From Caecitellus pseudoparvulus (lineage: Eukaryota; Protista; Bigyra: Bicosoecida), in assembly GCA_965644315.1 (NCBI GenBank), contig CBFFRQ010000096.1, positions 248,001-312,000 of the forward strand: a stretch of 64,000 bases of DNA. Reading direction: 5' to 3'. Below the pieces are notes generated by a model. The model saw only the letters and a program-made list of their open reading frames with translations, was not told the origin of the DNA and searched no databases. Made by a program: the position numbers and the translations under genes. How positions within the stretch are numbered: the first letter of the stretch is position 1; the number at the start of each line of letters is the position of its first letter. Positions 1,248 to 50,325 of the stretch are shown here, in pieces.

Positions 1248-4200
1248 TTACCCGATGACAGTCACCTCCTCATCCTCATCGTCCTCGCTGCCGCCCTCCA
1301 GCGCCTCCTTGAGAGCTGAGAGCAGGCCCTCCACGTCGTCATCGTCACTTTCGTCGGCAATGCGGTCGCCGTACGCCGCCATAAAGCGGGTGAACCCTTC
1401 ATCGACGTCGTCAGCATTCTCGCGCTCCCGCTCGATTTCAATAGCCACGTCGATGGTGATGCCGACAAACACCTGGCTGAACAGCACCGCCACCAAGGCA
1501 ACGTATGCCATGAAGTAAAATGCCGGGTTAATGCTGTTGGAAGCATCTACCAACGCGTACATGATGTCATTCCAGCTCTCAGCCAGCATGAGAACGTAGA
1601 GCGTGCTCATGGCAGACTCGAACGTGTCGAAGTTGGCGTTGCGCATGATCCCCACGACAGAGGGAGGCAAGTCTGACATGAGCCCGGCAAAGGCCCAAAT
1701 GCCAAGCACAGCGAAGGCATACATGACAAGCAACAGCAGGGCAAGGATGGAGAGGAACTTGTGAGCTTGTGCGATCAGCCCAAAGACCAATGCACGTGTC
1801 GCATGTACGACAGAGAACAAGCGCAGGACTGGCAGGACCATGGACAGGCGGGCCAAGTCGTTCACTTGCAGTGTCTGCAAGGAGTCCGCGTCCACAGAGT
1901 CGAGGCGAGCTTGGAATCCACCTGTGCTGGAGGTGGTCACGAAGAGACTTGCCAGAGCCACGATGATGGTCAGTACGATGATGAAGAAGTCGTAACGGTT
2001 CGCAGCGGTCTGGAACGGCGCCTGCTTCTCCTCTGGTGCATCGTCACTGGAGCCAGCGCTCGCTGCGGCGGCTGCGGCGGCTGCGGCCGCCGCATTCATC
2101 CTGGACGAACCAGCTGCTCCGCCGGACGAAGGGATGCGCCGCAGCGATCCAGTGCGTGCCATGTGGACAGCGTGGGAGGACCCTGTTGGCGAGGGCATGG
2201 ACTCTGTGCTGCGGGTTCTGCTGAGGGCTGCGGCGACTGCCGCTGGGTTGGAGGCGCCCGTGACAACCTGACGTGTGGCTTTCTTCTTTCCGTACCAGAA
2301 TCGCTTCCAGCCCACTGCCGCGATTCGCAGCAGGAGCTCCAGAGCGTACAGCAGAACGAAGATGGGCAGGACAGAGTCGATGAAGGGGCCGAGCTTGGTG
2401 CCAAAGAGGCAGATGGCCCACGTGTTGATGATGACGACACCCAAGATGAAGGAGTCAAACTTCACGTCCAGTTCGTTGTTGAAGAAGCGCTGCAGCCATT
2501 GCTGGCTTCGCAAGATGCAGCCCAGCAATGCCAGGCGACGCAAGCCATCGTTCATGGACTTTGTGACCATTGTGAAAATGAGGCGCTCTGACTGGTAACT
2601 GCGGCGTTCAAAGTTGAAGTTCTTCTTCACAATCAAGTACTCACACAGGTGGACGAACTCAGGAGGCCCTAGGCGATCTGGCAGCTTCTCATAGTGCTCC
2701 GTCTTGACCCCCGAAGAGGCTAGGAAGCGGGCGTACTCCTTGCGCTCCAAGCACCCCGATCCATCGTCATCGAGGAGGGAGAACGCAAGCACCAGGGCCA
2801 GGCGCCGCTTCTGCGTGCGGGCTTCCCTTGTGCGAGACTCGGACTCCGAAAACCGCTCCTGGAAGTGTGCGATGAGCAAAGACACCAAGATGAACAAGCC
2901 GATGAAGGAGATGACGATGAACATGGGCTTGAACAGCACCGCCAAGCGTCCGCCTGCGACCGAGGAGGTGTCGGACGCGCGGTAGACCACTTCGTTGTAG
3001 TTCTCGCCGGTTGTCACGAACACAAACATGGTGATCCATGCCGACTGGAACTCGGAAAACCCCCGTCCCGAGCCGTCTCCCTCTGTGCTGAGTGCTTGAG
3101 GCAGTGACACCGCCCGTTGGAAGCCACTGCCTGCAGCAGAGGCCACGGCGCCAGCCATGCCTGCTGCGTTGCTGGCGAGGGCAGAGAGCGCGGAGATCGA
3201 GGCAGCCAGGGTCGCGTCGGCTGCAGAGGCGACAATCACCGCATCATCCCCGGAGGATGCTGGGCTGTCTTCATTCGCCCCTCCAGCAGCCGCCGCCACC
3301 GCGGCGTCATCGGTGAAGACAGGGAACCGTAAATCTGACCTGGAGGATAGCAGTGCGATAGAGACACCGGCTGTCACAGCCAAGAAAGATGCGAACAGGG
3401 CCAACACACGCCTGGCCAAGATGAGGGTGGAGGAAAACGACCCCAAAGCCGAGCGGAGCGTCGGAACCCGAGCGATGATGTACAGGGGCCGCAGGATGGC
3501 CGTGACAGGCAGCAGAGTGGAGGTGCGCCCGGTGCGGTACCCGACAAACACGCGCGCACACCAGTCCACGACGAAGATGAACAGCAAGACGACACGCACG
3601 AGAAACAGCGTGCGCAGCTGGCCCTCTCGCTTGACTGCCCGTGGCTTGCCGTCAGCTTCTTCGTAATACTTGGCTCGGCGCCGAGCGCCACATGTGGCCA
3701 GGCCGTACAGGACATCGGCGACACGGGCTGAGCAGGTGCCAATGGCAGCGTCAGCAGCATCCTCTTCATCCAGCAGCGCTGCCTTTGCAGGAGTCATGCC
3801 CGAGTCGCCTTCTGCGCCGTATCCATCCATTCCCAGCGCCACAGCACCATGGTGCATGGACTGCCACTTGGCGTAGCGGCGGCACCAGGGTGCTGCCGCA
3901 TCGAACAGCCGGACGTAGTGCCGCCGCACTCCTCGCGCATACCAGATGAGCAGTGTGTCAGCAACTAAGATTAGCAAGCAGAGAAGCTCCACTCGCAGGA
4001 CTCCACCCCGCAGCCACTCATCTTCCCTCTGCACACCAAACTGGTCCACGCCAGAGCCCCCAGACAAAGGGCTGGATACGTCCCCTGCGGCGTACGACTC
4101 CTGTGTTCCGGGAACGCCGTTTTCCTGGGCCGCAACGTCAATGGAGTCACCCCAACTGCCTCGGTCCAGAATACCCAAGCTCCACGCATACGCCTTCTGC

Positions 4201-7200
4201 AGGTACCAGCCAGACACGATGCCGCTGTCAGCCTGGGCGCCGCCGAACGACCGCATGCGCAGCGTGGCAAGTCCGGTCCCTGCAGATGCAGTGCTTGGGC
4301 TTCCAGCTTGCAGGTTGGAGCCTATGGTGATGAGGGTGTCCTCCGAAGCAGGGCTGGCAAAGAGGACATTGCCGCGCCCCACTTGGCCATCCACTGTGAC
4401 GCCGGGCGGCAGGTCAGTGACGCTCTGCACCATGTCCACACCTTCAACGCCAACGACGAGGTCGCCTGCTGCCCCAACCGCAGCGGCGGGCGTGGTCAGG
4501 GGGATGGTGCCTGCAAGGGATGCAGTTGGGCCAGCTTCCCAGAATGCCAGCCCCAGGAACAGCACGAGGAAGATGTACACTGTCACAGTATACGACTTGG
4601 TTGACACGACCCGGTTAGACCACTCCCGCGCCCAGTGGGAGCGCGCTTCGAAGTACAGAGTCTCAAGGGGGTGGGCATCAGAGACGTAGTAGTGAATGAA
4701 CTGCCGCGCGCGACGGAAGAGCGTCTGTTCACGGGCGCTGAGCGGCAGCACGGTGCCGCCCGCGGTGGACGTGCGGCGCAGGTTTGCCATGGGGTTCTTC
4801 ACAGTCGCAGCGGGTGGCGTGGACAAAGGGTTCATGGTGGTGGCTTTGCCCTTGCCCAGGCTCTGCGAGGACGCCGAGAAGGACTGCTCCGCCGCGGCAA
4901 CTCGCGATCGGTACATGTCCCACGCACCCCCCTCCATGACGATGCCACGCACAACTGGGTACAGCATGCGGAAGGTCGTCCAAATGCCCACATCAAACGT
5001 CTCCTCTGTCTGGCCGGGCTTCTGCCCAGCGGCAGCTGCAGCTGACACCACCGCGGAGCTGCGCATCATGCCGCTCGCAAGCGGGGAACTCATGGGCGGC
5101 AAAGATGCGGATTTCCTAGGGGACAGGGGGCTTGCCAGTGTGCTCATGCGTTTGGCTGCCATGATGGAGGCAGCAGCACCCCGCAGACGCGCAGCTGGTG
5201 AGCGCAGACTTCCGCGGCCCGACGACCGACGCGAGTCTGGGTGGTCTGCCGCAGATGCCGCGCCCTGCACGTCCACAGAGAGGCCTGACCCTCGCTTCGA
5301 CTTTGAGCTCCGACGACGAGCACGGCCGGCAGCACTCAGCTTTGACTCTGCGATGCCCGGCGAATCCTCTCCAACGGACTCTAGTTTGGGGAAGCTCCGG
5401 CCCGCTGGCGTGGCCAAGGCGCCCGTGCCCGACTTGAGCACCTTGCTCATGCGCACCATGCGGACGATGTCGCCTGCCACCTTGCTCATGCGGCCCTTGC
5501 GGGGACTGAGCGGGCCCTTGACAATTGCCCCTGGCTGCGGACTGGCAGCTGCAGAGCTCACTGGCGAAGTGGGCAGGGGGCCAGCCTTTGCCTCCCGCTT
5601 CATCGAGCGGGCATCTCGCACTGCCTGGGAGATGGAGGAAGCTGCTTGGTCCTTCTGCACCTGCTGAAGTGTCTTGGACAGCAGGGGCTGCCTGGCAGGC
5701 GCGGCACCGGCGCCGGCTGCCTTGGCTGCACGCTTGCCCTCCAGACTGGACGACAGCACTGCCAAGTCCTGCTGCACTGCCAGCCCAGAGCCACCCGCCG
5801 CATCGGGGGACAGCACGCTCATCTTCTGCAGCGCTTGTCGCACGGCAGCGAGCTGCGCTTCAAGGCGCTCGGCGCGCACCTTCCGCGCATGCTGGGCCAG
5901 GGCAGTGGTGATGGTGGCTGTCAACACCACCGACAGCAGGATAGCACCGACAGCGACAATGAAGGCAATATTGGTCCACAGGTCGCTCTCTTCGTTCAGG
6001 GGTGCTCGGTGCACAGTGCAGTGCACGATGAGGTCCAGGCTGTTGCCCAGGCGCAGGGACGCCCAGTCGCCCAGCGCCAACGCGCCGACGGCTTGCATGG
6101 CCCACGTCTGCAGCTGTGTGAGCACAAAGCCAGCATGCTGCTTCTCAGCACTGGTGGCGGTGACAGGCCCTTCATAGCCAGACAGCGCCTGCAAAGACGC
6201 GGCGGCAGCCGTTGGGGCAAGGCCCACCACTCGCGCCAGGGCGGGTGCAGACAGGCCTGTGCTGGAGACACTGCTGCCAGAGGCCAGTGTGGCCCAGGAC
6301 GCGGCGACACTGAGAAAGGCCGCTGTTGCCTCCGCGCTGATGTGGGCAGTGCTGGACGACACGCCTCCCGTGAGGGTGGACGAGTGCACCAGGGCACGGC
6401 GGGGGCCGAGCCCGCCAGTAGCAATGAAGGGGGAACCGCGGCCCATGGCGAGGGACGCCAGTGTCTGCGTACTACTGACGTTTAGCGCGGCAGACACCAT
6501 GCCGAACACGCCCCCCACGGAGGCAATGTACACGTCGTCGCTCTCGGTGGGCAGCAGCCGCTGCAGCAGGCCTGAGCTGCCGTCAATGCTTGTGGAGGCG
6601 CCATGCGAGGAAGCCACCATGAGCCCGGCAGGGATGAGAATGTAGCCTTCCCCCCTTGAAGCGCTGGAGTCGGTGAAGAGGGCTGCGGCCGGCCCGCCTT
6701 GTGCAGTCGGCGTGGATGGTGGGGAGTCAGACAGCTGGTTGTCAGAGTACGTCGGGAGCGGCCTGCCGTATGCCGCTGGCGCCAGTAGCGGCAGCAGGGC
6801 TTGGGCCTGCTGCGTGGACAGCACAGTGGGCGGCGCAAAGGGAGACACGCTGGCTTGCCGTACAGCGAACAGTGTCGCCTCCAGGGAGTAGAACAGGCGA
6901 GGGAGCCACAGGCCAGCGCTGGCTGCCGAATACAGTCCACGCTCAGCACTGCCCGCGACAGGGCTGGTGCCCCCATAGTACTGCTGTGTGGATACCATGT
7001 CAGCCAGTTGCAGCGCGGACGTTTGGGAGGCGAGCGAACTTGCCATGCTCGTCAGCACTGCGCCACTGCCAACGTTGGCCACGTCTGCTGCGCCAGCAGT
7101 CATGGCAGAGGCGAATGAGCCTGTGAAGCGGCTGGCCAGAGTGTTGGACGCCTGTGTCGTCGCGATGCCTTGGGAGTAGGCGAGCAGGCGGGAGAGCGTG

Positions 7201-10200
7201 ACGGCACGGGTGGACAAGGAGCGTGCGAGGCGTGAGCGGCCCTCAGTGATGAGCACACGATTACCAGGAGGCAGGGAGATGGAGGCAACTGTGCTGGAGC
7301 GGCTGCTCTCTGCGTCCTGCTGCGCCAAGGCGGCGAGCTTCCGCGCTGGCGTGGCGCACTCCGACCCAAACAGCTCAACGCAGATGCCGCCACGGGAAAT
7401 GCCGGAGTACAACTCATTATCGGGGTGCCCGTTCAATGACGCAGCGTGCTTGGATGCGACAGCTGCGAGGTGCTGCACCCCGACTTCGCTGCTGAACACC
7501 AGCCCCTGCGCTGGCAGGGACGACGACACGGCCGGCCACCAGGCAGCTCCAACTGTCGGATTGGGCTGCAGCATGGCAGCCGTCGCAGCCGCGCTGTTCA
7601 CGGCATCCCCAGCTGCAAGCAGAGGTAGTAGGGTGGACGTGGCGGGTGCCGGTGGCAGCAGCCGCAGGGTGTGGTGCTGCGCCGGGGCGGAGGCTTGCAT
7701 GGCCGCAAAGCTGCCACGCTGAAGCTGCACACCATGATGCACCAGGGCCGCGGCAAGACTGTCAGTAAACACAGTCGCCGAGGAAGGAGTCCAGCCTAGC
7801 ACCTGCATCTCCCCTGCCGTCGCTGCCAGGGTGACAATCGTGGCGGTGCCAGATGAAGAGTTCACCAGCAGCGCATCTGGGACAGACGGGGCCGGGGCTG
7901 TTCCAGCGGAAGCCCACCCTGCCCGTCCCCACTCCTGGGCGCCTCTGCATGCAGCAGCTAGAGTGCTCGCTGAAGCATTTGGCTGCACGGCGCTGCCCAG
8001 TCCCAAAGCGAGCGCGAGCCTGGATGCGTCCGGGCCGAGGCCGTTCGGTGTCGCGGTGTTCAGCAAGGACGGCATATTTCCAAGCAAGCTGCTGGCTGCA
8101 ACGGCATGCACAGCAGCCCATGAGGCCGCAGGCACCTGCCCCGTTGCAGCCCCGGCGAGGGTTGTAGATGCGGCCACGTGCAGGTTGGCACCAGATGTGC
8201 TCTGTGTGCCTTGCCCCAGCAGACTCGTGTGACTGCCCAGGCGGCGGGACATGAGGCGCATGCCAACTTGCTGGGAAGGCGTCTGCAACGCGGACGCACC
8301 AATTGACACGCTCCAGATGGGCACCAGCACGGCAGAGGCATTCACAGCCCCCCCCCCCGAAAGAGCCAGCGATCCCGAAGACGAGGCAGTAGCCAAGGCG
8401 CCCGTGGCGGTGGCTTGCACGCGGGAAAGGACAGTGACTGCGCCTTGAGTGAAGGTGCTACTGCGGAGAGTGCCTCCCATGGCCCCTGCACTGGCCACAT
8501 CTCGCTGCATAGTGCCTGGGAAGGACGTGACGGGGCCCCAGCGTGGGGGATCTGCGCTGCCCGCGGATGCCAGTGCAGCAGCAGTGGCATGCATCGGAGA
8601 CAAACCTGAAGCAAGGGAGGCAGCCTCCCACGCCAGGGCAGTGGCAGCCATGTCTGCAGTGCACAAGGCTGACTGCCCAGACGCCGGCTGCCGGGCCAGT
8701 GCGAGCTCTGCAGCTGCCCCGTTCGCGCCCCCGAACGGGCCGTACACCGCCGCCATCGTTTCAGTGGCAGACACGTACCAATCTCTGTCCACGTTGCCTC
8801 GTGCAGAGGGGGTAGTGAAGTCTGATCGGGTCGAAGACAGCCCCAGTGGGCCCACCGGTGAACTCCACATGGCTTGGGTAACCTTGCTGGCGCGCTCCCT
8901 CAGTGGGCGTGGCACTTGTTCTGACCATGACAGGGCAGTGGAGGTGGTCACACCCAGGACCGACGCCAGTGTCAGGACGAGGTGAGAGGATGACATGGGG
9001 GAGGCTGACGTGCCGTCTGACAAACTCAGCACACCACCACCGACACCCCACGCTACGGTGCGCTGCTGCACCGGCGAGCTGCTGGCCACAGCGGCCGCCG
9101 CTGCCTGGACATCTGCTGCAGCCATGAACGGCATGTGCCCAGACTGAAAGAGTAGTGTTGGAGGCGCTGCCGTGCCGCCACTCGTGAAGAGGCCTCCGTC
9201 GGAGACGTGCACTGCCAGCGCCCCGCCAGCCGCGACCCAGTGCTGGGGTGGGCCCGCGGCGGGAGTCACGACCAGGCCAGTTGCAGCCACAGCAGGGGAG
9301 ACAGTGACACTCACTCCCTCCGCAGTGGAGGCTGCATCCGGTTCATGGAGGAAGGTGGAGCTCGCAAGCGGGTCCTCCATGTCCACGGCAGACAGGGTGA
9401 AGCGCTGCGGCAGGCCGACGCCAACCTTCAAGGCGGAGGCAGCTGAGTCCAACGCACAGGCAAGGAAGCCAGCTGTGCGGGTGGCGCCCGCAAGCAGTGC
9501 TTGCAGTGCCACTGCTGCGTTCCCTTGGGCCTCGCTGTCAGGTGGGGGCGTGCTGGCGGGCGCGGTGGCAGCCAGCAGACGGCGAAGGAGGGCTGACCTC
9601 CCCACTGCCGTCGTGTTCAAAGGCGAGGCTTTGGCGTCCAAGCGCTGCTGCATAGAAGCCTGGGCTGCCGCGGAGCAAGCTGAGCTAGGCGCAGTGCTCG
9701 CCCACGCGCCATGAGTCCCATTCACACACTCAGACGGAGCTAGCTGTGCAGGACTTGAAAGGCTAGACAACGCAGCTGAGAGGGCAGCGGAGGAGGATGC
9801 GATGCCTGGGGCTCGGCCAGAACTGGGAAGCGTTTCAGCAGCACGCGAGGCAGCAGGTTGAACTGCCAGGTGTGCCACAGCATCAGTCAGGGAGGCTGCT
9901 GAGGATGGCTGAAGTGGTGGTGCCAGGCTCGGCAGGGACATGCCCAGCATGCGCTGTGTTAGTGCGTGCAGGGCGACAGGCATGGCTGCTGCCCACTGGA
10001 CGGCGCGTGCTGCTCGGTACCCCTGCACCTCCACCACTGCTGTGTTGAGATCGCCCACGGCAGACGACCACGCGCTAGTCCACTGCAGGTACACGACCAG
10101 CACCAAGCCAAAGGTGACGAACATGACTGCGAGAGTGGTGCGCCCGATTCCACCGTTCTGACCAGCCAGTTCCTCTTCGTCTTCCTCTTCTGCAAGCTGC

Positions 10201-13200
10201 ATAGCAGCGTCGCTGCTCACACTCTCACCCACTGTGGCTGCTGTGGCAGTGGAGGCGGTGGACATGGCTGCAGATCGGGCACTGCCCAGCAGGTCCACAT
10301 CACGACGCTTGGCCAAGGCCCCCAAACTCTCCCTCCGGCGATCAGTGTGGGCGGGAGATGGAGTGCCACCCGCAGACTGCTCATCAGGCACCACGCACAC
10401 GTGCGCCTTGCCACCCTTGCCGACGACCACAGACACACGCCGCCTGGGTCTCGGTGGTGCGTGTGGGGATCGAGGCCCGTCCTGCTGTGGGTCAAGCATG
10501 CGGTCAGCCATGGTCTGCAACAGGTTCGTGGTCCACTGACGCCCTGCCGTGGACTTTGCCCTGGAGCGGGCTGACGGGCCAGCCTTGCTTCGAGGGCGGG
10601 ACACGGGCCCTGCCTCAGAGCCGGCGCGTGACGCTGGCTCCTCATCCTCAGTTCGCAGGTCATGGCAGCAGTCTACACACGCAGCTTTGGCGTGGGTGAA
10701 CATCTTATACTTGGCTTGGGCCACCACCAGCAAAGTGGTGACAAGGATGACGAGCGTGAGCACCGTGGGCACCAGAAGCGGATACCACAGGTATCCCGCA
10801 AAGGCTGTGCGCGACACGGCAACCGTGACAGTCCATGGTGGCATGACATGACTGCCCGTGGTGTTGGCGCTTCCGCTGGCAGGCGCAGGCAGCACAGACA
10901 TGTCGTCACAGTGCCACACCTGGTCTGTCGCGGCAGCTGGCAGCTCCCACATGCCTCGCAAGCTCTGCCACGGGTCTGCATCGGGTGCCGGGCGGGCAAA
11001 GGCCTTGGCCGAGCAGCGGCTGTGGGAAGCATACCATTCCTGCCACGCTGCCAGGGCGCTGGTGGCTGGGAGTGGGGCGGAGAAGGAGGAGGCTTGACCA
11101 TCAGGCAAGGAGGCTGCACTGGCGGAGCCCCCTTCCCACCACAGCGCAGCATTCTGCCGACTTGCCCTGTGAGCCGTGTACGCGAGGGGCTCTGACAAGG
11201 GGTGTGCAGCGGCAAAGCGGTCAGCCTGGTCCGCCGTTTGCCACGGCAGGCGCAGCAGCGCGGGCTGCGACGAGTCCAGGCCATTTGCCAGCACTGTGCG
11301 GGTGAATGGCGTGGCGATAGTGCCTTCGGCTGCGAGGGCAATTGAGTCCGTGGCTGGTCGGCGGTAGCGGGACGTGCCGGCGAATCGCCTGCGGGCTTTG
11401 GACAGCACTGCTCCACTGCAAGCAGGCAGCGGGTAGAACTCGCCTGTGAGGATGCCCGCTGAAGGTACAGGGCCTTCCATGCCCCCTGCCTCGGAGGGCG
11501 CAGCGAAGGCTTCCCTTCGGCGTGCTGCGGCAGCCTGCACGCCTGAGCTCTTGCCCACGGCGGTTGCGGCGGACGCCTGGCCGAGGATGCTCCCCAGGGA
11601 CCCAGGAAAGTTTAACTGAGCAGATTCCAACCACTGACCTGCTCGTGCAACGGACAGCTGCCACAGGCCATGCAGGGTGGTTGCGTCCACGACAGTGCCT
11701 TGCGCCGGATCGGGGGCGCCTTGGCCCAAGGCCGCGCCATCCGTCATGCTGGATCGAGCAGGTGCATGCAGCAGTTCGTTCACTTGGGCCATGGAGCCTG
11801 GTGCGCCGAGGGAAGGGGAAGACGCATCGGCCGCGCTAGACTGGGCGGAAACGAAGCTGCCTGTGGACAGCCCCACGCACATGTCCGTGTCTTCTTGCCC
11901 GCGCTGCCCGGCTGAGAGGAATGCAAGGGAGGAGCCTGAGGCAAGCACGTCATCTACGTACTGTGCAGCACCTTCCCCTGACACTGTGTGCAAGCGATCA
12001 GACAGCACAGACAAGGGGATAGCCAGGGACGTCACCACCACAGAGCTGCCGCTGCAAGACGCCTCCTGCACTGCTGGTCCCCCAGCGCCCGCCAGTTCCG
12101 CGGCCTCTGCGAGGGTAAAGGCGGCGCCCAGGTGCGCGGGAATGCGATGACGCAGAGTCAGCACGGCCACGAGGTCGTCTGGGCTGCCAGTAATGTTGGG
12201 CGCTGGAGACGCGACTGTAGCCCCAGCGCTATCTCTGCCCCACCCTGCCACTTCCGCCAGGCTGTGCACAGACCAGAAGGAGGCAGGCAAGGCAGCACTA
12301 GAATTGTGCAGGGACGCTGTGGATGAGCCACAACCCCCTGCGGCGTCATTAGGGCGCAGAACACCGGCCAGGTACGGGCGTGCAGCAACCATGGAGCGCA
12401 GCCAGGCATGTGGCTGCGAAGCAGGGGCACACAGGCAACCACGCTGGCGCACTGCAGCGTTAGGGTCGAGCGTCGTGGGGACAGTGCGCTGTAGAATGCG
12501 CCTGGCAACTTCCTGTGGCTCCTGCCCGCTCCCTTGAAGCGTTGTGTTCATGCTACCGGCAGCCTTGGTCGCCAAGGGCAGAAACGCCAGGGGATCATCA
12601 CTGGCACCCGGGCCACCCAGTGCACCACCCTCGTGGGCCCGACTGGAGGCAGCAGCCAAGAGCTGCGCCGCTGGCAGCCTGGTCGACGGCCTGCCCTCGC
12701 CGGGCTGCAGCAGGGCGGCGTGGTACCAGATTGGCACCTGCGTCCATGGGTGGGCAGCGTCGTCATTGGCACACAGGAAGATGCGAGAGGCCAGTGCGGC
12801 CGTAGATGCGCTAGCTTGCCACCACCAGCTGGGCTGAGCCCAAGGCTGTGCAGGCGCGGCACCCCACCGGTCTGCAGCGTGGCTGGGGCTGTGCAAGGTG
12901 GAGGCCGTGCCCGCACCTGCTGGCGAGAGTGGTTCATGTGCAAACGGGGCGGGCGGCGTCCAGTCTTGTTCAAAGAAGCAGGCGCAGTTGTCACCCGTGC
13001 TGGCAGGGGGAGCGGACATCTGGGCAGAGCCATGTGAGTGCAGTGCACCACGCACCGGCGCCTGGAGGTCCTCCCACAGCTGCTGCTGTGCTGTGAGAGG
13101 GGGCGCGGTACCAGCGGGATCGAAGCGAGGCGCCACCGAAGCCCATGAAGACACGTAGGAGGGCGATGCTCCAGGAGCCGCTGAGCGGCGTGCTCCTCCC

Positions 13201-14873
13201 AGAAGCGTGCCCGACGACACATCCAGCACCTCGCCCCACACCGCGTCCCCCCGCCGCCACAGCTCAGCGACAAGCCCAGTGCGGAAGGACCGCAGGCGTG
13301 CTCGAGAACTGTCAAGTGAGGCCTGCGGATCGGCCAGTCGTTGCAAGGCTGCGAACATACTGGTGTTCATCCCTGCGCCGAAGGTGTCGAAGGCATCGTC
13401 ACGCAGACTGCGCGCGATGGAGTCCGCCCCCACCGCGCTGGACAGAGCAGAAAAGGCAGCTGCCTCATGGACGCCAGCCCGCGTGCGAACCCAAGCCCTG
13501 CCCTGCAACTCGGCCCACAGACCTGCTTCCAGCGACCAGCGCTGGGTCTCCTCGGTGACGAGAGTGGCTGTAGAGTTCACGAGGTTCTCCGTGGCAAAGT
13601 CCACGGAGAACGCGCTGCCTACCATGCACACGACAGAAATGAACACAACACCAAGTGTCATGACTGTCAAAATGCATGACAGTTGGATGCAGCGAAACCA
13701 GTGCGACCAGCAAGACGTGCGCACCACCTCAACTTCCGTGGACTTGGGGCGCTTCAGGCTGCCAGGTTTCTCAGACTTGGTGCTGCTTGCAGGGGTAGGC
13801 GGAGCCTTGGACGCCCCCGTGGCGCCCTTTGGCGGGGTACTGGAGCTCTTGACAGCAGTTGGCCGGGCTGCAGGAACTGAAATGCTGCTTGAGCGATCGA
13901 CGCCTTCGCTCCCCTGCAGTGGGTTCGCCACAGTCCGGACGCCTGACGATGTGCCAGATCGGACTGATCGTGCTCCACCGCCACCATCTTTTGGCACAGG
14001 TGTGCCAGCTGATGCATCTTCTCCACTTGCGCCCGATCGCTTCAGTGCGGTAAGAAGTGACCCCATGACTTTCTGGCGCCGATCAAGAGGAAGCGTGGGT
14101 TTGGGCCGCTGGGCCGCTTGTGATTTAGGAGGGGCACTTGCACCAGCTGAAGCAGCATGCTCTGATCCGAGAGCTGTTGACGACCGCAGTTCGGGGCGTG
14201 GAAGCCCTTGGGCAGTGCCAGCAGACTCTGGGCTGGCCTTGGCGGACAAGCTTGACGATGTCGGGCCCGCGCCTCGTGCACTCTTGGAGCCCCCGGCGCC
14301 CTCCTTGGGTGATGTGGGCGGCAGGATGTCTTCTTCTACGCTAGCAGATGCCATCCCTTTCGTCTTGCCTTTTGTAGGTGCAGGCTTGGCTTTCACCGCC
14401 TCTGGCGTTGGGCCAGAGCCACTGGCGCTGGGCTGTCCTTGCTCCTTCATCGCTGACAGCATGGAGCCAAGGATCTTCTTTCGCCGGGAAACGGGAATGG
14501 AGACAGGGCCGCCCTTTGCCTTGCTGGATGGTGCCGTGCTGGGGCCGGGGGAGGGAACTGCGCCAGGCGCAACTGCGCTTGGCTTGGGTGGTGGCCGTGC
14601 CGCCTGGGGAGGCTTGGAACCGGCGTCTTTGTCTGCCGGCCCGGACGGCTTGGGAGACATGACAATGGCACCAACGGACAGTCTGCCAATCTTCCCCTGC
14701 CCAGTCTTACTGATCTTCGCGCTGGCTGGCTTTGGCTTCTCCAACGAAGCTGGCCGTGGTTTGTGCGCGGATGGCGTTTCGGGGGAAGTCTCCTCGGCAG
14801 CTGTTGCCGCTGAGCGGGTCTGTGGATCCGGTGAGGAGCCCCTACACCTTTTTACATCACTGTCTGACTCCAT
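1248..14873 (-). CDS. Giant 4541-aa membrane protein: two TM-luminal domain-TM (Cache-like) modules fused to a C-terminal two-pore (2x6TM) cation channel with EF-hand
   Basis: Uninterrupted ORF. The C-terminal ~1100 aa carry two S1-S6 repeats, pore helices FSEFQSAWITMFVFVTTGENY and NFDTFESAMSTLYVLMLAESWNDIM, and linker EF-hand DDDGSGCLERKEY. Four extra hydrophobic helices lie upstream. The channel call is strong; the Cache call is tentative. Confidence 0.85.
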   Translation of the reverse strand: MESDSDVKRCRGSSPDPQTRSAATAAEETSPETPSAHKPRPASLEKPKPASAKISKTGQGKIGRLSVGAIVMSPKPSGPADKDAGSKPPQAARPPPKPSAVAPGAVPSPGPSTAPSSKAKGGPVSIPVSRRKKILGSMLSAMKEQGQPSASGSGPTPEAVKAKPAPTKGKTKGMASASVEEDILPPTSPKEGAGGSKSARGAGPTSSSLSAKASPESAGTAQGLPRPELRSSTALGSEHAASAGASAPPKSQAAQRPKPTLPLDRRQKVMGSLLTALKRSGASGEDASAGTPVPKDGGGGARSVRSGTSSGVRTVANPLQGSEGVDRSSSISVPAARPTAVKSSSTPPKGATGASKAPPTPASSTKSEKPGSLKRPKSTEVEVVRTSCWSHWFRCIQLSCILTVMTLGVVFISVVCMVGSAFSVDFATENLVNSTATLVTEETQRWSLEAGLWAELQGRAWVRTRAGVHEAAAFSALSSAVGADSIARSLRDDAFDTFGAGMNTSMFAALQRLADPQASLDSSRARLRSFRTGLVAELWRRGDAVWGEVLDVSSGTLLGGARRSAAPGASPSYVSSWASVAPRFDPAGTAPPLTAQQQLWEDLQAPVRGALHSHGSAQMSAPPASTGDNCACFFEQDWTPPAPFAHEPLSPAGAGTASTLHSPSHAADRWGAAPAQPWAQPSWWWQASASTAALASRIFLCANDDAAHPWTQVPIWYHAALLQPGEGRPSTRLPAAQLLAAASSRAHEGGALGGPGASDDPLAFLPLATKAAGSMNTTLQGSGQEPQEVARRILQRTVPTTLDPNAAVRQRGCLCAPASQPHAWLRSMVAARPYLAGVLRPNDAAGGCGSSTASLHNSSAALPASFWSVHSLAEVAGWGRDSAGATVASPAPNITGSPDDLVAVLTLRHRIPAHLGAAFTLAEAAELAGAGGPAVQEASCSGSSVVVTSLAIPLSVLSDRLHTVSGEGAAQYVDDVLASGSSLAFLSAGQRGQEDTDMCVGLSTGSFVSAQSSAADASSPSLGAPGSMAQVNELLHAPARSSMTDGAALGQGAPDPAQGTVVDATTLHGLWQLSVARAGQWLESAQLNFPGSLGSILGQASAATAVGKSSGVQAAAARRREAFAAPSEAGGMEGPVPSAGILTGEFYPLPACSGAVLSKARRRFAGTSRYRRPATDSIALAAEGTIATPFTRTVLANGLDSSQPALLRLPWQTADQADRFAAAHPLSEPLAYTAHRASRQNAALWWEGGSASAASLPDGQASSFSAPLPATSALAAWQEWYASHSRCSAKAFARPAPDADPWQSLRGMWELPAAATDQVWHCDDMSVLPAPASGSANTTGSHVMPPWTVTVAVSRTAFAGYLWYPLLVPTVLTLVILVTTLLVVAQAKYKMFTHAKAACVDCCHDLRTEDEEPASRAGSEAGPVSRPRSKAGPSARSRAKSTAGRQWTTNLLQTMADRMLDPQQDGPRSPHAPPRPRRRVSVVVGKGGKAHVCVVPDEQSAGGTPSPAHTDRRRESLGALAKRRDVDLLGSARSAAMSTASTATAATVGESVSSDAAMQLAEEEDEEELAGQNGGIGRTTLAVMFVTFGLVLVVYLQWTSAWSSAVGDLNTAVVEVQGYRAARAVQWAAAMPVALHALTQRMLGMSLPSLAPPLQPSSAASLTDAVAHLAVQPAASRAAETLPSSGRAPGIASSSAALSAALSSLSSPAQLAPSECVNGTHGAWASTAPSSACSAAAQASMQQRLDAKASPLNTTAVGRSALLRRLLAATAPASTPPPDSEAQGNAAVALQALLAGATRTAGFLACALDSAASALKVGVGLPQRFTLSAVDMEDPLASSTFLHEPDAASTAEGVSVTVSPAVAATGLVVTPAAGPPQHWVAAGGALAVHVSDGGLFTSGGTAAPPTLLFQSGHMPFMAAADVQAAAAAVASSSPVQQRTVAWGVGGGVLSLSDGTSASPMSSSHLVLTLASVLGVTTSTALSWSEQVPRPLRERASKVTQAMWSSPVGPLGLSSTRSDFTTPSARGNVDRDWYVSATETMAAVYGPFGGANGAAAELALARQPASGQSALCTADMAATALAWEAASLASGLSPMHATAAALASAGSADPPRWGPVTSFPGTMQRDVASAGAMGGTLRSSTFTQGAVTVLSRVQATATGALATASSSGSLALSGGGAVNASAVLVPIWSVSIGASALQTPSQQVGMRLMSRRLGSHTSLLGQGTQSTSGANLHVAASTTLAGAATGQVPAASWAAVHAVAASSLLGNMPSLLNTATPNGLGPDASRLALALGLGSAVQPNASASTLAAACRGAQEWGRAGWASAGTAPAPSVPDALLVNSSSGTATIVTLAATAGEMQVLGWTPSSATVFTDSLAAALVHHGVQLQRGSFAAMQASAPAQHHTLRLLPPAPATSTLLPLLAAGDAVNSAAATAAMLQPNPTVGAAWWPAVSSSLPAQGLVFSSEVGVQHLAAVASKHAASLNGHPDNELYSGISRGGICVELFGSECATPARKLAALAQQDAESSRSSTVASISLPPGNRVLITEGRSRLARSLSTRAVTLSRLLAYSQGIATTQASNTLASRFTGSFASAMTAGAADVANVGSGAVLTSMASSLASQTSALQLADMVSTQQYYGGTSPVAGSAERGLYSAASAGLWLPRLFYSLEATLFAVRQASVSPFAPPTVLSTQQAQALLPLLAPAAYGRPLPTYSDNQLSDSPPSTPTAQGGPAAALFTDSSASRGEGYILIPAGLMVASSHGASTSIDGSSGLLQRLLPTESDDVYIASVGGVFGMVSAALNVSSTQTLASLAMGRGSPFIATGGLGPRRALVHSSTLTGGVSSSTAHISAEATAAFLSVAASWATLASGSSVSSTGLSAPALARVVGLAPTAAAASLQALSGYEGPVTATSAEKQHAGFVLTQLQTWAMQAVGALALGDWASLRLGNSLDLIVHCTVHRAPLNEESDLWTNIAFIVAVGAILLSVVLTATITTALAQHARKVRAERLEAQLAAVRQALQKMSVLSPDAAGGSGLAVQQDLAVLSSSLEGKRAAKAAGAGAAPARQPLLSKTLQQVQKDQAASSISQAVRDARSMKREAKAGPLPTSPVSSAAASPQPGAIVKGPLSPRKGRMSKVAGDIVRMVRMSKVLKSGTGALATPAGRSFPKLESVGEDSPGIAESKLSAAGRARRRSSKSKRGSGLSVDVQGAASAADHPDSRRSSGRGSLRSPAARLRGAAASIMAAKRMSTLASPLSPRKSASLPPMSSPLASGMMRSSAVVSAAAAAGQKPGQTEETFDVGIWTTFRMLYPVVRGIVMEGGAWDMYRSRVAAAEQSFSASSQSLGKGKATTMNPLSTPPAATVKNPMANLRRTSTAGGTVLPLSAREQTLFRRARQFIHYYVSDAHPLETLYFEARSHWAREWSNRVVSTKSYTVTVYIFLVLFLGLAFWEAGPTASLAGTIPLTTPAAAVGAAGDLVVGVEGVDMVQSVTDLPPGVTVDGQVGRGNVLFASPASEDTLITIGSNLQAGSPSTASAGTGLATLRMRSFGGAQADSGIVSGWYLQKAYAWSLGILDRGSWGDSIDVAAQENGVPGTQESYAAGDVSSPLSGGSGVDQFGVQREDEWLRGGVLRVELLCLLILVADTLLIWYARGVRRHYVRLFDAAAPWCRRYAKWQSMHHGAVALGMDGYGAEGDSGMTPAKAALLDEEDAADAAIGTCSARVADVLYGLATCGARRRAKYYEEADGKPRAVKREGQLRTLFLVRVVLLFIFVVDWCARVFVGYRTGRTSTLLPVTAILRPLYIIARVPTLRSALGSFSSTLILARRVLALFASFLAVTAGVSIALLSSRSDLRFPVFTDDAAVAAAAGGANEDSPASSGDDAVIVASAADATLAASISALSALASNAAGMAGAVASAAGSGFQRAVSLPQALSTEGDGSGRGFSEFQSAWITMFVFVTTGENYNEVVYRASDTSSVAGGRLAVLFKPMFIVISFIGLFILVSLLIAHFQERFSESESRTREARTQKRRLALVLAFSLLDDDGSGCLERKEYARFLASSGVKTEHYEKLPDRLGPPEFVHLCEYLIVKKNFNFERRSYQSERLIFTMVTKSMNDGLRRLALLGCILRSQQWLQRFFNNELDVKFDSFILGVVIINTWAICLFGTKLGPFIDSVLPIFVLLYALELLLRIAAVGWKRFWYGKKKATRQVVTGASNPAAVAAALSRTRSTESMPSPTGSSHAVHMARTGSLRRIPSSGGAAGSSRMNAAAAAAAAAAASAGSSDDAPEEKQAPFQTAANRYDFFIIVLTIIVALASLFVTTSSTGGFQARLDSVDADSLQTLQVNDLARLSMVLPVLRLFSVVHATRALVFGLIAQAHKFLSILALLLLVMYAFAVLGIWAFAGLMSDLPPSVVGIMRNANFDTFESAMSTLYVLMLAESWNDIMYALVDASNSINPAFYFMAYVALVAVLFSQVFVGITIDVAIEIERERENADDVDEGFTRFMAAYGDRIADESDDDDVEGLLSALKEALEGGSEDDEDEEVTVIG

Positions 14874-20347: not shown

Positions 20348-22560
20348 TCAAGAGTCACCCATGAACATACTAGCAACTTTGCACGCTTCATGATCCTTGT
20401 GCCCGTGAAAGAGGTGCACACTATGAGCAGCAAGCACATGGGCAAACCCTTCTGCTTTCGTCGGCGCCTGAAATGCGCTTGGGCTGAAGCCACTGCGGAT
20501 CACGCGGTGTGGCACATGCCGCCGATCTGCTATGTTAACGAGTCCCGGAAGCTCAAAAGGGCAGGTTGCACGAAACATGTTCAAGTGGGTTGCTCTTGCT
20601 ACCGAGCCGGGCAGCACGACAGCAATCGCAGTGGCGCCATGCTGCTGCGCAAGGGTCAGCCAGTCGTGGCGAACTTCCACAGAACGGTTGGTTGCGTCAA
20701 TCACAACACTCCCTCCTACCTGTAGAGCATTTGCTGCAGCCTCAATGCACTTCCGCTTGCTGCCTAGTTTGTCTTGGTTCACAATGGTCATGCTGGAGCC
20801 GTGCAGGCGTGCCCACGTGCTCTTGCCGGAACCTGGCGGACCCACCAGCACAGTCAACGTGGGCCCTTCATGCGAGGCACAGATGTCATGAAACACCTGA
20901 TCCATCGCTGCTGAAGTGCTGTGAGTGCTGGCGTTCAAGTCTCGGTGCGGAACAAAGCCCAGCGCACGGTCCACAAGCTTTGGCGCATCCAGGGGCGACC
21001 CGTGCACTCCAGTGCAGCACCCGGCAAAGAGTGCGTTCGGCGTCAGGAAGGGAACGCCTACATTCAAGGCTAGTTGTAAGTCACTGCATGAATGGTCTGC
21101 TTTCGGGGCTGCAGCTCGCTTTCCACTGGCCGGAGGCACGTACCCTCCCGCAGCAACCTTGTCCTCCTTCGACCTTCCAGCTGCGTCACCCACGAACGCA
21201 GCCATGGGAGGTGGGGTCAATGGAGAGGGGGGTCTGCGGGCAGCGTAGCACAACTCCTGTGCCAGCATCCACATCCCAGGTCGTGGCTTGCGAAAGAAAT
21301 CGGCTCCGTGTGTCGCTGCGAGGGTCAAAGTTGGGACTCCGGCGGCTTCGAGGGCGGCAGAAATACCGGCGAGGCGATCGCGCAGTAGGGGGGCTCGTGT
21401 GGCAGCCTTAGCACCACTGGCACCGCTTTGGTTGGTCAGGAGCACGATGGGTATGCCTGCTTCGTGCACGCAGCGCAGAACTGAAGGAACGCTGCTGTGC
21501 CACCACCCCCAATCGTCTGCACTGCTTGGGAATGCCCGGCCAGACTTCACAACTCTGACCACCGTGTCATCGACGTCCAAGGCAAGCATGGGCCCAGAGT
21601 CATACCCCTTTGGCGGTTCCGCTTGTTCCGGCCACCCTTGCCAGCGTGGGCTGACGAGCACAGCAACGTGACCCCAGTGCTCGTACTTGTGCAGTGGGGT
21701 GACGGGGGGCAGCACAGCCTTTGCGGCTGGACAGACATCTCCCCCCTCTGCAGCTGCAGTGGACACATGCTTCTGGGCTTGTGGCTTCTTCGAAAACATG
21801 GCTGCCAGGCCAGATTGTTTGCCAGACGTGGAGGCGGCCGAAGCTGCTGGCACGCACTCACCCTCTACGCCGGCAAAACCAGGGACCCACGCGCCGTCTC
21901 CCTGGAGGGAGATCCACTCGCCACGAGGTAGAGATGTGCAGCTACCACCCTCCGGAGTCTCCTTGCGCCACGGCAACCGGAGTTGGGACGGGACGTGAAA
22001 GCAGCTGTCCTGTGCAGCAGCTTGCAATGCCCGCTGCAACGCGCTTGGCATGTTAGGATCACTGGATGCTTCCTGGGCCTTCTGTGCTGGCCGTTTTGCC
22101 CTTGGCTCTGACGCGGTTTGCTCAGGTTGGCGGGTGCGCTTTTGTTGGCCCCCACAGGCTCCTGGACCCGCCATGTGTGGCACGAGGTACAGCCCGATAT
22201 CATCAGGGTGCCCTTTGCTCAAGGCGTCCAGCGCCCAGTCCACGCGCAAAACAGGACCTGTAAATTCACCCTCGTCCATCACGGCGCGAAGGACCTGGAC
22301 AGCTCCAGCTGATGCGTCTGCCTCCACCAATGCCGCCGTGCATGCACTCGGAGGGAGAGCCTGAGGCTCAAACAGCACCTGTGCCCCGGCACCCCCAAGC
22401 AACGAGCTCAGCCCCGCGATGCGCTGCAGAGACAGGCAGATGAAGTGGATAGGTGCAGATGTAGCGTTTTCAACGGAGAGTACCTTACCGCCTCGCTGAA
22501 CACCTTTCGATGCAGAAGCAGATGCCAGCCATGTAAGGCTTTGCCTGCGGCTTTTGCCAT
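20348..22560 (-). CDS. PNKP: Polynucleotide kinase 3'-phosphatase with N-terminal BRCT-like domain
   Basis: HAD motif LDVDDT, TNQSG, FRKPRPGMW, FVGDAAGR, DHSCSD; kinase P-loop GPPGSGKST, VVIDATN. Predicted ATG at 22560 and phase-0 intron 22488-22424. Confidence 0.88.
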
Positions 22561-22938
22561 GCTCTTGTTGCGTATGGATTAACGGAAAGACGGATGCACA
22601 AGGTACGGCTTGAAATGGTGGCCGAGAAAAACCAAACCAAGTAGGAATGAAGAATAAGATTAGCGCTGCGCTGGTGTTCGGCTTGTATTGTATGGCGACG
22701 GCTGCATCTCTCTGCCATGGCGTGGTGCATTGCGGAAAGCCCGGCCACAAACAAGTCCTTCAAGGTAAAAAGCATGCGCGAGCATGTGTCACAGGTAGAG
22801 CATCCGTTTCATCTAGACTCTTTGCTCCATGTCTGCGCGCCGCTGCTCGTTGGCACTCACCCAGCAGAACAAGCCACTGGCTAGTGTGCGGAACTTGGGT
22901 TTGAACCAGCTGCTCGGTGCAGGCGTTTTGAGCCGAGC

Positions 22939-47828: not shown

Positions 47829-50325
47829 CTAGAACAGGTCCTGGTCGTACGAACTCATGATCTCCTTGCGAGAAATGATGCCCACGGGCTCGTTGGCATC
47901 ATCTGTCACAACCAAGTGCCTTATGCCGAGAGATCTGAACAGCGTGAACACTCGGCTGAGAGGGCACTGGCGCTGCACTGCGATGGGCACGGGGTTCATG
48001 ATGGGGCGCAAGTCCAGGTACGCCGCCAAGTCCTCCGGCGCCAGGTCGGCCACGCCATCGGTTGACTGCGTTTTGCTGCTGAGCGTCGTAGCGAAGTCAT
48101 CCACGTGCAGGCGCTGGGCGGCCGTGGGCCCAAAGGCGCGGTGCTTCAGCATGACCACCAGCTGGTTCCGCATGATCATGCCGACGTACCGGTGTGGCTG
48201 TGCTGTGGAAACGACGGGGAAGCCGTTGTGGCGGCACGTCTGCAGCAAGCGCACGACGTCCTTCACTGGCGGCATCTCTGTCAGCATGCGCACGGGGTGA
48301 GCCATGACGTCCTGCGCCGTGGACGCGAACATGTTCCCTGACGGCTTGGACTCCACGAAGGGCATGCACTGCAGCTCAACGTGCAAGTCATACAGTGCAA
48401 TGCCAAACAAGTCTCCGACCCACTTGCTGACGAGCAGCACAAGCATGGTCGGGGTGACGAACGTGATGTCGTTCGTGGTTTCAGTCAGGATGACAGCGAG
48501 AGAGATCGTCATGCGTGCGACGCCACCTAAACTTGCCGTGGCGCCGATGATCGCGTAAGTGCCCGGCACGACGCCTGCGTCGGGGAACAGCATGCGAATG
48601 GCCTCCCCCATAAGCCGCCCGTACGCGCAGCCCATGAGGATGCACGGCACAAAGAGGCCTGACGGCACGGAGATGCCGTAGGTGATCACCGCAAGGAAGA
48701 AGATGACGACGAAGAAGCCCAACAGGGCGCCCATGTCGTACTGTTCCTCGTTGTGGAAGAAACCCTTGATGACTTGCTCCCATGGTGCGAAGAGGATGCT
48801 CGCCATGGTGTTGTACTCGCCGTCGGCGCAGTTGTACCGTGAGAGGAACTCCTTACTGGCGTCCCCGATGATGGGTCGACACTCAGAGAATACGTAGGGT
48901 GCCCAGAACGTCAGGACAGCCGTGGACAATGCAACGAGCATGGCTTCAGTCCACTTCAGGAGGGGCTTGCCTGCCAAGTGCTCCCGGCGCCAGTGGCAAA
49001 TGCGCTCATTCACAGTGTTGAACAGTGCGCCTTGCAAGCCCCCAAACAGGCCCAGGATGAGGAAGAAAGGCAGCTCCCACACACGGAATGGGTCCTTGAT
49101 GGCAGGCGCGAAGGAGATGAGCCCAGAGTAGTTGGAGGAGGGGTCCTCGATGATCTTCCAAATGTTCAGGAAGAACGTGCCCAGCACCGAGCACATGAAC
49201 ACCATCCACGTCAGCTGCGTGGACCAGAACGATGACGCCTCCTCCAAGGAAAAGAGAATGCCGCCCACAGGCGCCCCGAACGCAGCAGCGACGCCAGCCG
49301 CCGCCCCGCCCGACACGAAGTCGCGCTTGTCCTTGTCGTTGCGGAAGCGGTGCGTCCAGCCCCGCAGCCAGGATCCGCGCCTGGACAAGCGCGCACAGCC
49401 AGTGCAGTGAGACACGTTGGCCGCCACCACTGCCCCTGTGTGCACGAGGGGGCCTTCTTTGCCGATGGCTAGCCCCGCTCCAACGGCAAAGACAACCCCG
49501 ACGCACTTGACCAGCAGTGTGGGGATGCGCAGGAAGCGGGCGTAGTTTGTGCCGTTCAGATACCCCTTAATTTGCGGAATGCCACTGCCTGCCGCAACGG
49601 GCTCGACAAACGCTGTCAGTGCCGCGGCGACGGCGACGTAGGCCAAGTCGAAACCCAGGTACACCCCGAATGCAGCTGGCAAGGAGTTGGACCATGTCAG
49701 CGGGTGCACGTTGCTGAACTTGAGCTCTGTGAGGAACTCCACAGCCTTGGCCAGCCCGAAGGCCACCGTGCCTGTGATGACACCGACAATGCCAAACACC
49801 CACCAGCGTGCCAGGTTCACGCGGGAGTTCTGGGCCTGGTCCGTGCCCATGCGGTCACGCCGGTACAGTGCGTTGGCTGGCACGTCGTAGTCCAGGGACT
49901 CATACGAGTACATGAGCCGCAGCTCCTTCTCAGACATGTGGTGTGTGTGGCTGTTCTTGTGTAGCTTCTTGGGTGCATGGTCAACCGCTGCTGCAGCAGC
50001 GTCCGCCACATCCTGAGCAGGGGCGCAGGGCGGCAAGCGTGCACGCCCGCAGCGCCAGCTGCTTGGCTCAGGCACTCACAGCCATGTCCTCCAGCAGCGC
50101 CGTCGCTGCAGCTTCTGCGGCCTTGTGCCGCCTCCTGATTGATTCCTTATCTTCCATTGCTGAAACACTGTCCACACTTGTCAAGGCGATGCCGGTGTCG
50201 CCTGCAGAGAGGTGAAAAGGTTGGCCTCAAGTGCAGTGCACTTCGCACGCTGGAGCGGGCGCCAGCCGAGCCTGGTACGCACCGGATGCAGTCCTCTCCT
50301 GGCGCCTTCTGCCAGCCACGCTCAT
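47829..50325 (-). CDS. CLC-6/7-type Cl-/H+ antiporter with two CBS domains
   Basis: YESLDY, GSGIP, GKEGP, LEEASSFW, SGLFVP, HNGFPV; predicted introns 50282-50202 and 50079-50013. Confidence 0.92.

Follow-up and report, generated by a model that had tools for sequence, protein, structure and literature searches.

Can a calcium-type channel and a large outward-facing receptor module be parts of one and the same protein? This question is raised by an open reading frame (ORF) in a stretch of 64,000 nucleotides from Caecitellus pseudoparvulus (contig CBFFRQ010000096.1, positions 248,001 to 312,000), referred to as the window in the following. The ORF occupies 1248-14873 on the minus strand, starts with ATG and comprises 4541 codons plus stop in a single uninterrupted frame; upstream of the ATG just 2 more codons are open. 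A reading made beforehand from the letters of the window alone (the sequence-only reading) had described an intronless single-chain chemoreceptor, in which two Cache-like luminal sensor modules are joined to a two-pore channel (TPC). In our analysis the fusion proved to be real, conserved within a narrow clade and unusual: a module with four transmembrane (TM) helices and loops of extracytosolic character precedes a two-repeat channel. The identity of the loops as Cache sensors was not upheld. The explanation which we favour, and regard as probable, is one polypeptide consisting of a two-repeat channel of the Ca2+ type, a putative EF-hand and a fused auxiliary or receptor module with four TM helices and two ectodomains.

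No intron is necessary to read the frame, as had been claimed, and it is intact in the window and in three ENA metagenome sequences. The scaffold P0006 derives from a 99% identical strain, encodes 4541 amino acids (aa) with zero indels and has the same neighbours; the contigs P0001 and P0002 encode collinear orthologues of 4518 and 4486 aa with about 50% identity overall and 62-63% in the channel. The search for the same architecture which the sequence-only reading had suggested thus yielded full-length collinear relatives, all of them within the narrow clade. In addition, two partial sequences were found. P0003, a fragment of 269 aa, extends from the final part of loop 1 over TM2 and the linker. 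P0004 is the partial NCBI protein CAE7870863.1, filed as Symbiodinium sp. KB8, which is 99% identical to aa 2810-3561 and probably represents DNA of this protist contaminating a Symbiodinium assembly; on one contig it starts in loop 2, crosses TM4 and the linker and reaches IS1, bridging the junction between module and channel independently. Beyond the gene, tblastx of the P0001 and P0002 contigs against the window returned a noisy output with only low-scoring matches, and synteny of the flanks was not seen.

Contigs from two marine metatranscriptome libraries with 98-100% identity tile the positions 3000-8900 (channel, linker and loop 2) with zero splice joints, and within the linker between TM4 and the channel they cover 4674-5340. 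They are consistent with one unspliced transcript, without proving one. The window differs from P0006 by 121 synonymous and 41 non-synonymous changes. The ratio of non-synonymous to synonymous differences per site (pN/pS) was 0.01 in the channel and 0 in TM1-4, 0.11 in loop 1, 0.25 in loop 2 and about 0.3 in the cytosolic linkers. Between P0001 and P0002 the synonymous sites are saturated; non-synonymous divergence (dN) reached 0.16-0.32 in the loops and 0.07 in the channel, the ratio to synonymous divergence (dN/dS) in the loops was 0.10-0.18 at saturated dS, and the loops contain 3 and 12 gap columns. Because both pN/pS between the strains and dN between P0001 and P0002 are low, the whole frame is judged from these comparisons to be translated and under purifying constraint, which is weaker in the loops than in the pore. 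TM1-TM4 are 63-72% invariant, on par with the channel core, and this suggests a specific packing of the helices beyond mere anchoring. The most conserved extracytosolic part is the loop between S1 and S2 of repeat I (IS1-S2 loop) with 92% identity between P0001 and P0002 and a dN/dS of 0.02; it could be a contact site for the big loops.

The N-terminus of the window protein contains a basic amphipathic motif twice (RRKKILGSMLSAMK and RRQKVMGSLLTALK, 14445-14486 and 14040-14081, minus strand), which may be a targeting or calmodulin-type site. Since the orthologues carry the motif once and their predicted starts lie just before it, the real start codon of the ORF may be some later Met.

Transmembrane helices were called with a 19-residue Kyte-Doolittle hydropathy scan. 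Four strong isolated peaks ahead of the channel bear out the earlier positions of TM1-TM4, the loops estimated at ~940 and ~1370 aa measure 942 and 1366 aa, and all motifs cited by the sequence-only reading were found at their coordinates. Its "short basic" linker between TM2 and TM3 is, with 190 aa and a net charge of +2, neither short nor markedly basic overall. From the N-terminus to the C-terminus the following features were assigned, the sidedness being predicted:

1248..14873 (-): whole ORF, 4541 aa plus stop
13683..14873 (-): N-terminal cytosolic region, aa 1-397; Lys/Pro/Ser-rich, of low conservation, probably disordered
13614..13682 (-): TM1, aa 398-420; by hydropathy, 65% invariant across three orthologues
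10788..13613 (-): loop 1, aa 421-1362, 942 aa; extracytosolic orphan domain with 10 invariant Cys, Lys 0.4%, Trp 3.1%
10716..10787 (-): TM2, aa 1363-1386; by hydropathy and orthologue alignment
10146..10715 (-): TM2-TM3 linker, aa 1387-1576; cytosolic by composition
10077..10145 (-): TM3, aa 1577-1599; by hydropathy and orthologue alignment
5979..10076 (-): loop 2, aa 1600-2965, 1366 aa; extracytosolic orphan domain with 6 invariant Cys, Lys 0.4%
8766-8792 (-): RxWY-like motif VDRDWYVSA in loop 2; not conserved as a motif
5904..5978 (-): TM4, aa 2966-2990; by hydropathy, 72% invariant
4590..5903 (-): TM4-to-channel linker, aa 2991-3428; cytosolic, Arg/Lys/Ser-rich, net charge +32
2865..4589 (-): channel repeat I (IS1-IS6), aa 3429-4003; by Ion_trans and hydropathy
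4008-4529 (-): IS1-S2 loop, aa 3449-3622, 174 aa; outward, conserved
3444-3515 (-): IS4, charge-poor; by Cav alignment
2988-3014 (-): pore motif I TTGENYNEV with Glu3957; by orthologue alignment
2463..2864 (-): I-II linker, aa 4004-4137; cytosolic, carries the EF-hand loop
2736-2771 (-): EF-hand loop DDDGSGCLERKE, aa 4035-4046; 10 of 12 residues invariant in orthologues, ligand positions included
1455..2462 (-): channel repeat II (IIS1-IIS6), aa 4138-4473; by Ion_trans and hydropathy
1788-1853 (-): IIS4; 2 of 5 Cav gating-charge positions kept
1563-1589 (-): pore motif II MLAESWNDI with Glu4432; by orthologue alignment
1251..1454 (-): acidic C-terminal tail, aa 4474-4541; 26 Asp/Glu in 68 aa

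Loop 2 is best conserved in its C-terminal third (aa 2481-2965), and the TM4-to-channel linker ends in a highly conserved region preceding S1 (aa 3290-3428).

The C-terminal part of the protein matches the Pfam family Ion_trans in three stretches (E 4.8e-37), the only other Pfam match within its last 1100 residues being a weak EF-hand, and 12 further hydrophobic or amphipathic segments after aa 3429 fit two repeats of six TM helices (2x6TM), so that the complete 2x6TM channel of the earlier reading is confirmed. Its designation as a two-pore channel holds for the architecture, but not for the type of pore, which is Cav-like by sequence. The closest PDB matches are Cav1.x (8e-23), those to TPC1 ranging from 3e-4 to 4e-2. 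Both pore modules find their best match in Cav1-3; repeat II is closest to repeats II and IV of Cav channels (with Cav1.1, about 31 bits for either), whereas AtTPC1 is collinear over pore I, IS6 and the EF-hand region at 15-21 bits. Glu3957 and Glu4432 align with the filter Glu of Cav channels, stand in a motif of the TGE(D/N)(W/Y)N type and are invariant in three orthologues, while TPC-type filter motifs and a nearest similarity to TPCs were not found. A four-repeat Cav is not present either: there are two repeats instead of four, the charges of S4 are mostly lost, the putative EF-hand lies in the I-II linker and the ectodomains are fused rather than provided by a separate alpha2delta. In HMMER alignments only one of five gating charges is kept in IS4 (against Cav1.2 IS4) and two of five in IIS4 (against Cav1.1 IVS4).

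With TPC1 of the plant and stramenopile type the protein shares two 6TM repeats per chain, a nearly uncharged S4 in repeat I and, putatively, an EF-hand right after IS6, but it differs in its 4541 aa, the four extra TM helices and an ectodomain of 2300 aa. The EF-hand loop follows the canonical pattern D-x-D-x-S-G-x-L-x-x-x-E with invariant ligand positions; a second EF-hand was not evident in the I-II linker. Diatoms and other stramenopiles possess TPCs with two EF-hands, and the divergent diatom TPCL has no EF-hands and an Asp in its filter (PMC11085791). The Glu filters described here are unlike the motifs of diatom and animal TPCs and unlike the Asp-containing motif of TPCL (PMC11085791). 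TgTPC from Toxoplasma, a protein of 1502 aa with an extended N-terminus and linker, carries only cytosolic extensions and no EF-hands (PMC8490419). Word-based searches with the channel alone returned a 99% identical fragment and a distant PKD_channel/Ion_trans protein of 1809 aa, and no close relative of ordinary size. From these motifs we infer that the channel would be permeable to Ca2+ and modulated by cytosolic Ca2+; phosphorylation of the basic, Ser-rich linkers probably modulates it as well.

The predicted position of loops 1 and 2 outside the cytosol, luminal or extracellular according to the sequence-only reading, is well supported by their composition. Lys accounts for 4 of 942 residues in loop 1 and 6 of 1366 in loop 2 (0.4% each) as compared to 36 of 397 in the N-terminus and 24 of 438 in the TM4-S1 linker. 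Overall, the cytosolic linkers of this protein have 5-9% Lys. The two loops contain 4-6% Arg and 1.5-3.1% Trp, in contrast to cytosolic linkers, the inter-repeat linkers of two other giant channel ORFs included, with 3-5% Lys, 8-12% Arg and less than 1% Trp. With little Lys plus Arg and much Leu plus Trp the loops resemble the channel's own outward IS1-S2 loop and not the cytosolic linkers. Moreover, three orthologues share an even number of invariant Cys residues in each loop: loop 1 has 10 (out of 11) and loop 2 has 6 (out of 8). The four TM helices before the channel place the N-terminus of IS1 in the cytosol, in agreement with the earlier proposal. The richness in sequons proved less marked than had been noted for both loops: there are 12 sequons in 2308 aa, six per loop, which is barely above chance as judged by shuffling (2.4 expected in loop 1, P about 0.02; 4.9 expected in loop 2, P 0.36). 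The orthologues retain no more than four of the 12. Ala makes up 19-20% and Ser 12-14% of the loops. Their content of order-promoting residues is 0.25-0.28, compared to 0.13-0.17 in the disordered cytosolic parts and 0.38 in the channel. The loops are read as folded lineage-specific domains interspersed with low-complexity inserts.

Searches for the identity of the loops led to no family. At E<=10, Pfam gave no family for either loop in three orthologues, nor for ten overlapping tiles of 300 aa. NCBIfam gave nothing on the loops or the channel, PDB sequence profiles of both loops gave noise only, and the feature search of the ESM Atlas gave no usable match for either of them. For VWA_N, VWA and VGCC_alpha2 neither a Pfam match in the loops nor a PDB sequence match was obtained. 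When 1.84 billion representative proteins were searched with a profile of loop 1, only the same clade and one fragment of 269 aa came up, and two JGI metagenome scans, one with loop 2b patterns and one with whole-protein patterns, detected no relative. Judged by these searches the loops belong to no assigned family and are orphan, lineage-specific domains. Within the 30.6-Mb genome no loop paralogues were found, and a self-BLASTP of aa 398-2990 revealed no internal repeats. Loop 1 and loop 2 were also considered as a duplicated module; hhalign gave a probability of 0.1%, the loops are unrelated and therefore this idea was rejected.

For the favoured explanation the following mode of action may be proposed. 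Two copies of the two-repeat channel would pair as a dimer and form a four-fold pore. Because each repeat contributes a Cav-type filter Glu, this pore would carry an EEEE-like ring, and it would most likely conduct Ca2+. Voltage is probably not the main trigger of the channel, since the S4 segments of both repeats keep so few of the charge positions. The putative EF-hand right after IS6, in the position of the EF-hands of plant TPC1, probably gives feedback by cytosolic Ca2+. The covalently attached N-terminal module would display two large lineage-specific extracytosolic domains, probably disulfide-bonded and partly glycosylated. It may act in cis in the manner of alpha2delta, Mid1/FAM155 or the polycystin-1 ectodomain, that is in folding, trafficking and anchoring, and it possibly passes an outside cue to the channel.

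Alpha2delta/CACHD1 and Mid1/FAM155 are large disulfide-bonded, glycosylated extracellular partners of Cav, NALCN and Cch1 channels and offer a functional analogy for the possible role of the fused loops. They are, however, separate polypeptides with VWA plus Cache domains or of Cys-rich type, none of which was detected in the loops at E<=10. Polycystin-1 and the PKD-REJ proteins comprise ~4300 aa with a huge ectodomain and extra TM helices before a 6TM channel-like domain. The likeness is by analogy only, in that a giant ectodomain and extra TM helices precede the channel; polycystin-1 belongs to the TRPP family, its ectodomain is composed of recognisable PKD, REJ and GAIN domains and no sequence similarity was detected. 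In open-access full texts on TPC plus Cache, two-domain Cav-like channels and receptor-channel fusions nothing like the architecture of this protein was described.

Several observations weigh against the proposed explanation. The loops have no function assigned from any structure or homologue, and AlphaFold2 models from three-sequence alignments reached a mean predicted local distance difference test score (pLDDT) of 30.8 for loop 1 and 28.8 for loop 2 (aa 1766-2965), too low for meaningful fold matches. The loops have a biased composition, low entropy being found in 26-49% of 20-aa windows, and their rate of divergence is about that of the disordered cytosolic linkers. For the I-II linker searched alone, the match to EF-hand_6 reaches 18.9 bits (E 0.0012) and stays below the Pfam cut-off of 25. 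The metatranscriptome contigs are short, none of them crosses the whole linker junction and a carry-over of DNA into the RNA libraries is possible. Nor does size alone set the protein apart, because this genome commonly contains giant channel ORFs with long inserts.

Among the alternatives, gigantism by insertion survives best, and we consider it unlikely. The loops would then be mostly weakly constrained, lineage-specific Ala/Ser-rich expansions that do not contribute to gating, and the protein would function as a Ca2+-regulated two-repeat channel of the ordinary kind. Apart from the bias and the divergence just mentioned, low language-model recognition scores (990-1345) fit this explanation, and other Ion_trans ORFs of the genome, with 3750-4125 aa, contain inserts of 800-1100 aa. 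These inserts, however, sit between repeats and are cytosolic in composition, whereas the extra part of this protein includes four TM helices whose conservation equals that of the channel core. Few indels in the loops, invariant patterns of Cys, Trp and Pro, the Lys-poor and Trp-rich composition and the pN/pS of 0.11-0.25 also argue for more than passive expansion. Channel gigantism as such is a genome-wide trait: the genome holds at least 14 other Ion_trans matches, several of them in open frames of 2200-4125 aa, and in the two giant channels examined, inserts of 800-1100 aa separate the TM clusters. Particular to this ORF, as far as its composition tells, is that the extra mass constitutes a separate 4-TM module of outward-facing character.

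It would also be conceivable, and in our view is quite improbable, that two products arise from the one ORF, either by an internal promoter or by cleavage in the basic TM4-S1 linker, which would free a glycoprotein acting in trans like alpha2delta or cleaved polycystin-1. The linker of 438 aa is basic and Ser-rich, its first 300 aa are poorly conserved, and the RNA contigs are short, none of them covering the whole junction. Across that junction, however, the frame is free of stops in four assemblies despite saturated synonymous divergence. The continuous run of P0004 from loop 2 into IS1 on one contig and the RNA-library contigs inside the linker likewise speak for one chain.

That both loops are Cache- or PAS-like sensor modules of the dCache or alpha2delta-like type, which would make the protein a single-chain chemoreceptor channel, is very improbable. 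The dCache fold, about 250-300 aa enclosed by two TM helices, has a long stalk helix and then two PAS-like alpha/beta modules. Each loop does lie between two TM helices as in bacterial periplasmic sensors, conserved segments stand right after TM1 and TM3 and right before TM2 and TM4, and the low-confidence model contains a strand at aa 1348-1353 before TM2. But the loops are 3-5 times as large as a dCache domain, and the low-confidence model begins loop 1 with a run of helices over ~120 aa instead of one stalk helix and then sheets. Similarity was found neither between the loops nor to PDB sequences or ESM Atlas clusters. The RxWY-like motif of the sequence-only reading is present in loop 2, where VDRDWYVSA aligns to SGLPWYRSA and AGQIWFRSS of the relatives: Trp2032 is invariant and the next residue remains aromatic (Tyr or Phe), but the Arg is replaced by Leu or Gln. 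No Cache or VWA family appeared at E<=10 for the three orthologues or the ten tiles, and a six-frame search of the genome with dCache_1 (PF02743) gave weak matches of 24-36 bits at three other loci and none in this ORF, the Pfam cut-off being 45 bits. Cache modules are therefore detectable in the sequence style of this organism. The Cache label is unsupported by these data, and structurally it is neither shown nor refuted. The three stretches below the threshold lie at C64:310067-310414, C18:350643-351032 and C79:154023-154301, with open frames of 1122, 549 and 1557 aa.

To our knowledge, the channels of the Cav, Nav and TPC group receive outside information via separate subunits or voltage. 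Here, about 2300 conserved residues of predicted outward orientation share a chain with a pore of the calcium type and with voltage sensors of degraded appearance. Should the ectodomains indeed control the gate, this marine protist would possess a device that signals directly from the surface to calcium, and the protein would represent a new design of channel-receptor. In its furthest form, to which we attach little probability, this would be a new kind of ionotropic receptor: gating would have moved from degraded voltage sensors to 2300 aa of extracytosolic domains, which sense a ligand, a surface or a mechanical cue and are coupled via four TM helices to a Cav-like EEEE pore, and as a two-repeat channel with Cav-type filters it would also bear on the origin of the four-domain Cav channels. 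The combination of two repeats, Cav-type Glu filters and a putative TPC1-like EF-hand should be useful for reconstructing the step from two- to four-repeat calcium channels. If the loops are passive expansions, the protein is an example of how far channel proteins inflate in this lineage.

The genome comprises 30.6 Mb on 215 contigs. The light-harvesting family Chloroa_b-bind has no match in it, and this DNA is present in marine metatranscriptomes; the organism is probably a non-photosynthetic (heterotrophic) marine protist. Other giant intronless channel ORFs lie at C62:14000-33999 and C67:252000-281999. One giant channel ORF, a frame of 4071 aa, has four TM clusters with linkers of 800-1000 aa and is four-domain-like; of another frame with 4125 aa, 3751 aa were examined. 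Within the window the neighbouring genes are located on mixed strands. An ORF of 1927 aa at 58157-63940 (-) has no Pfam match; the stretch that contains it has a G+C content of 70-73%, which clearly exceeds the mean of the window. Ordinary neighbours are a CLC chloride channel with a CBS domain at 47829-50075 (-) and a PNKP-type polynucleotide kinase/3'-phosphatase at 20348-22750 (-).

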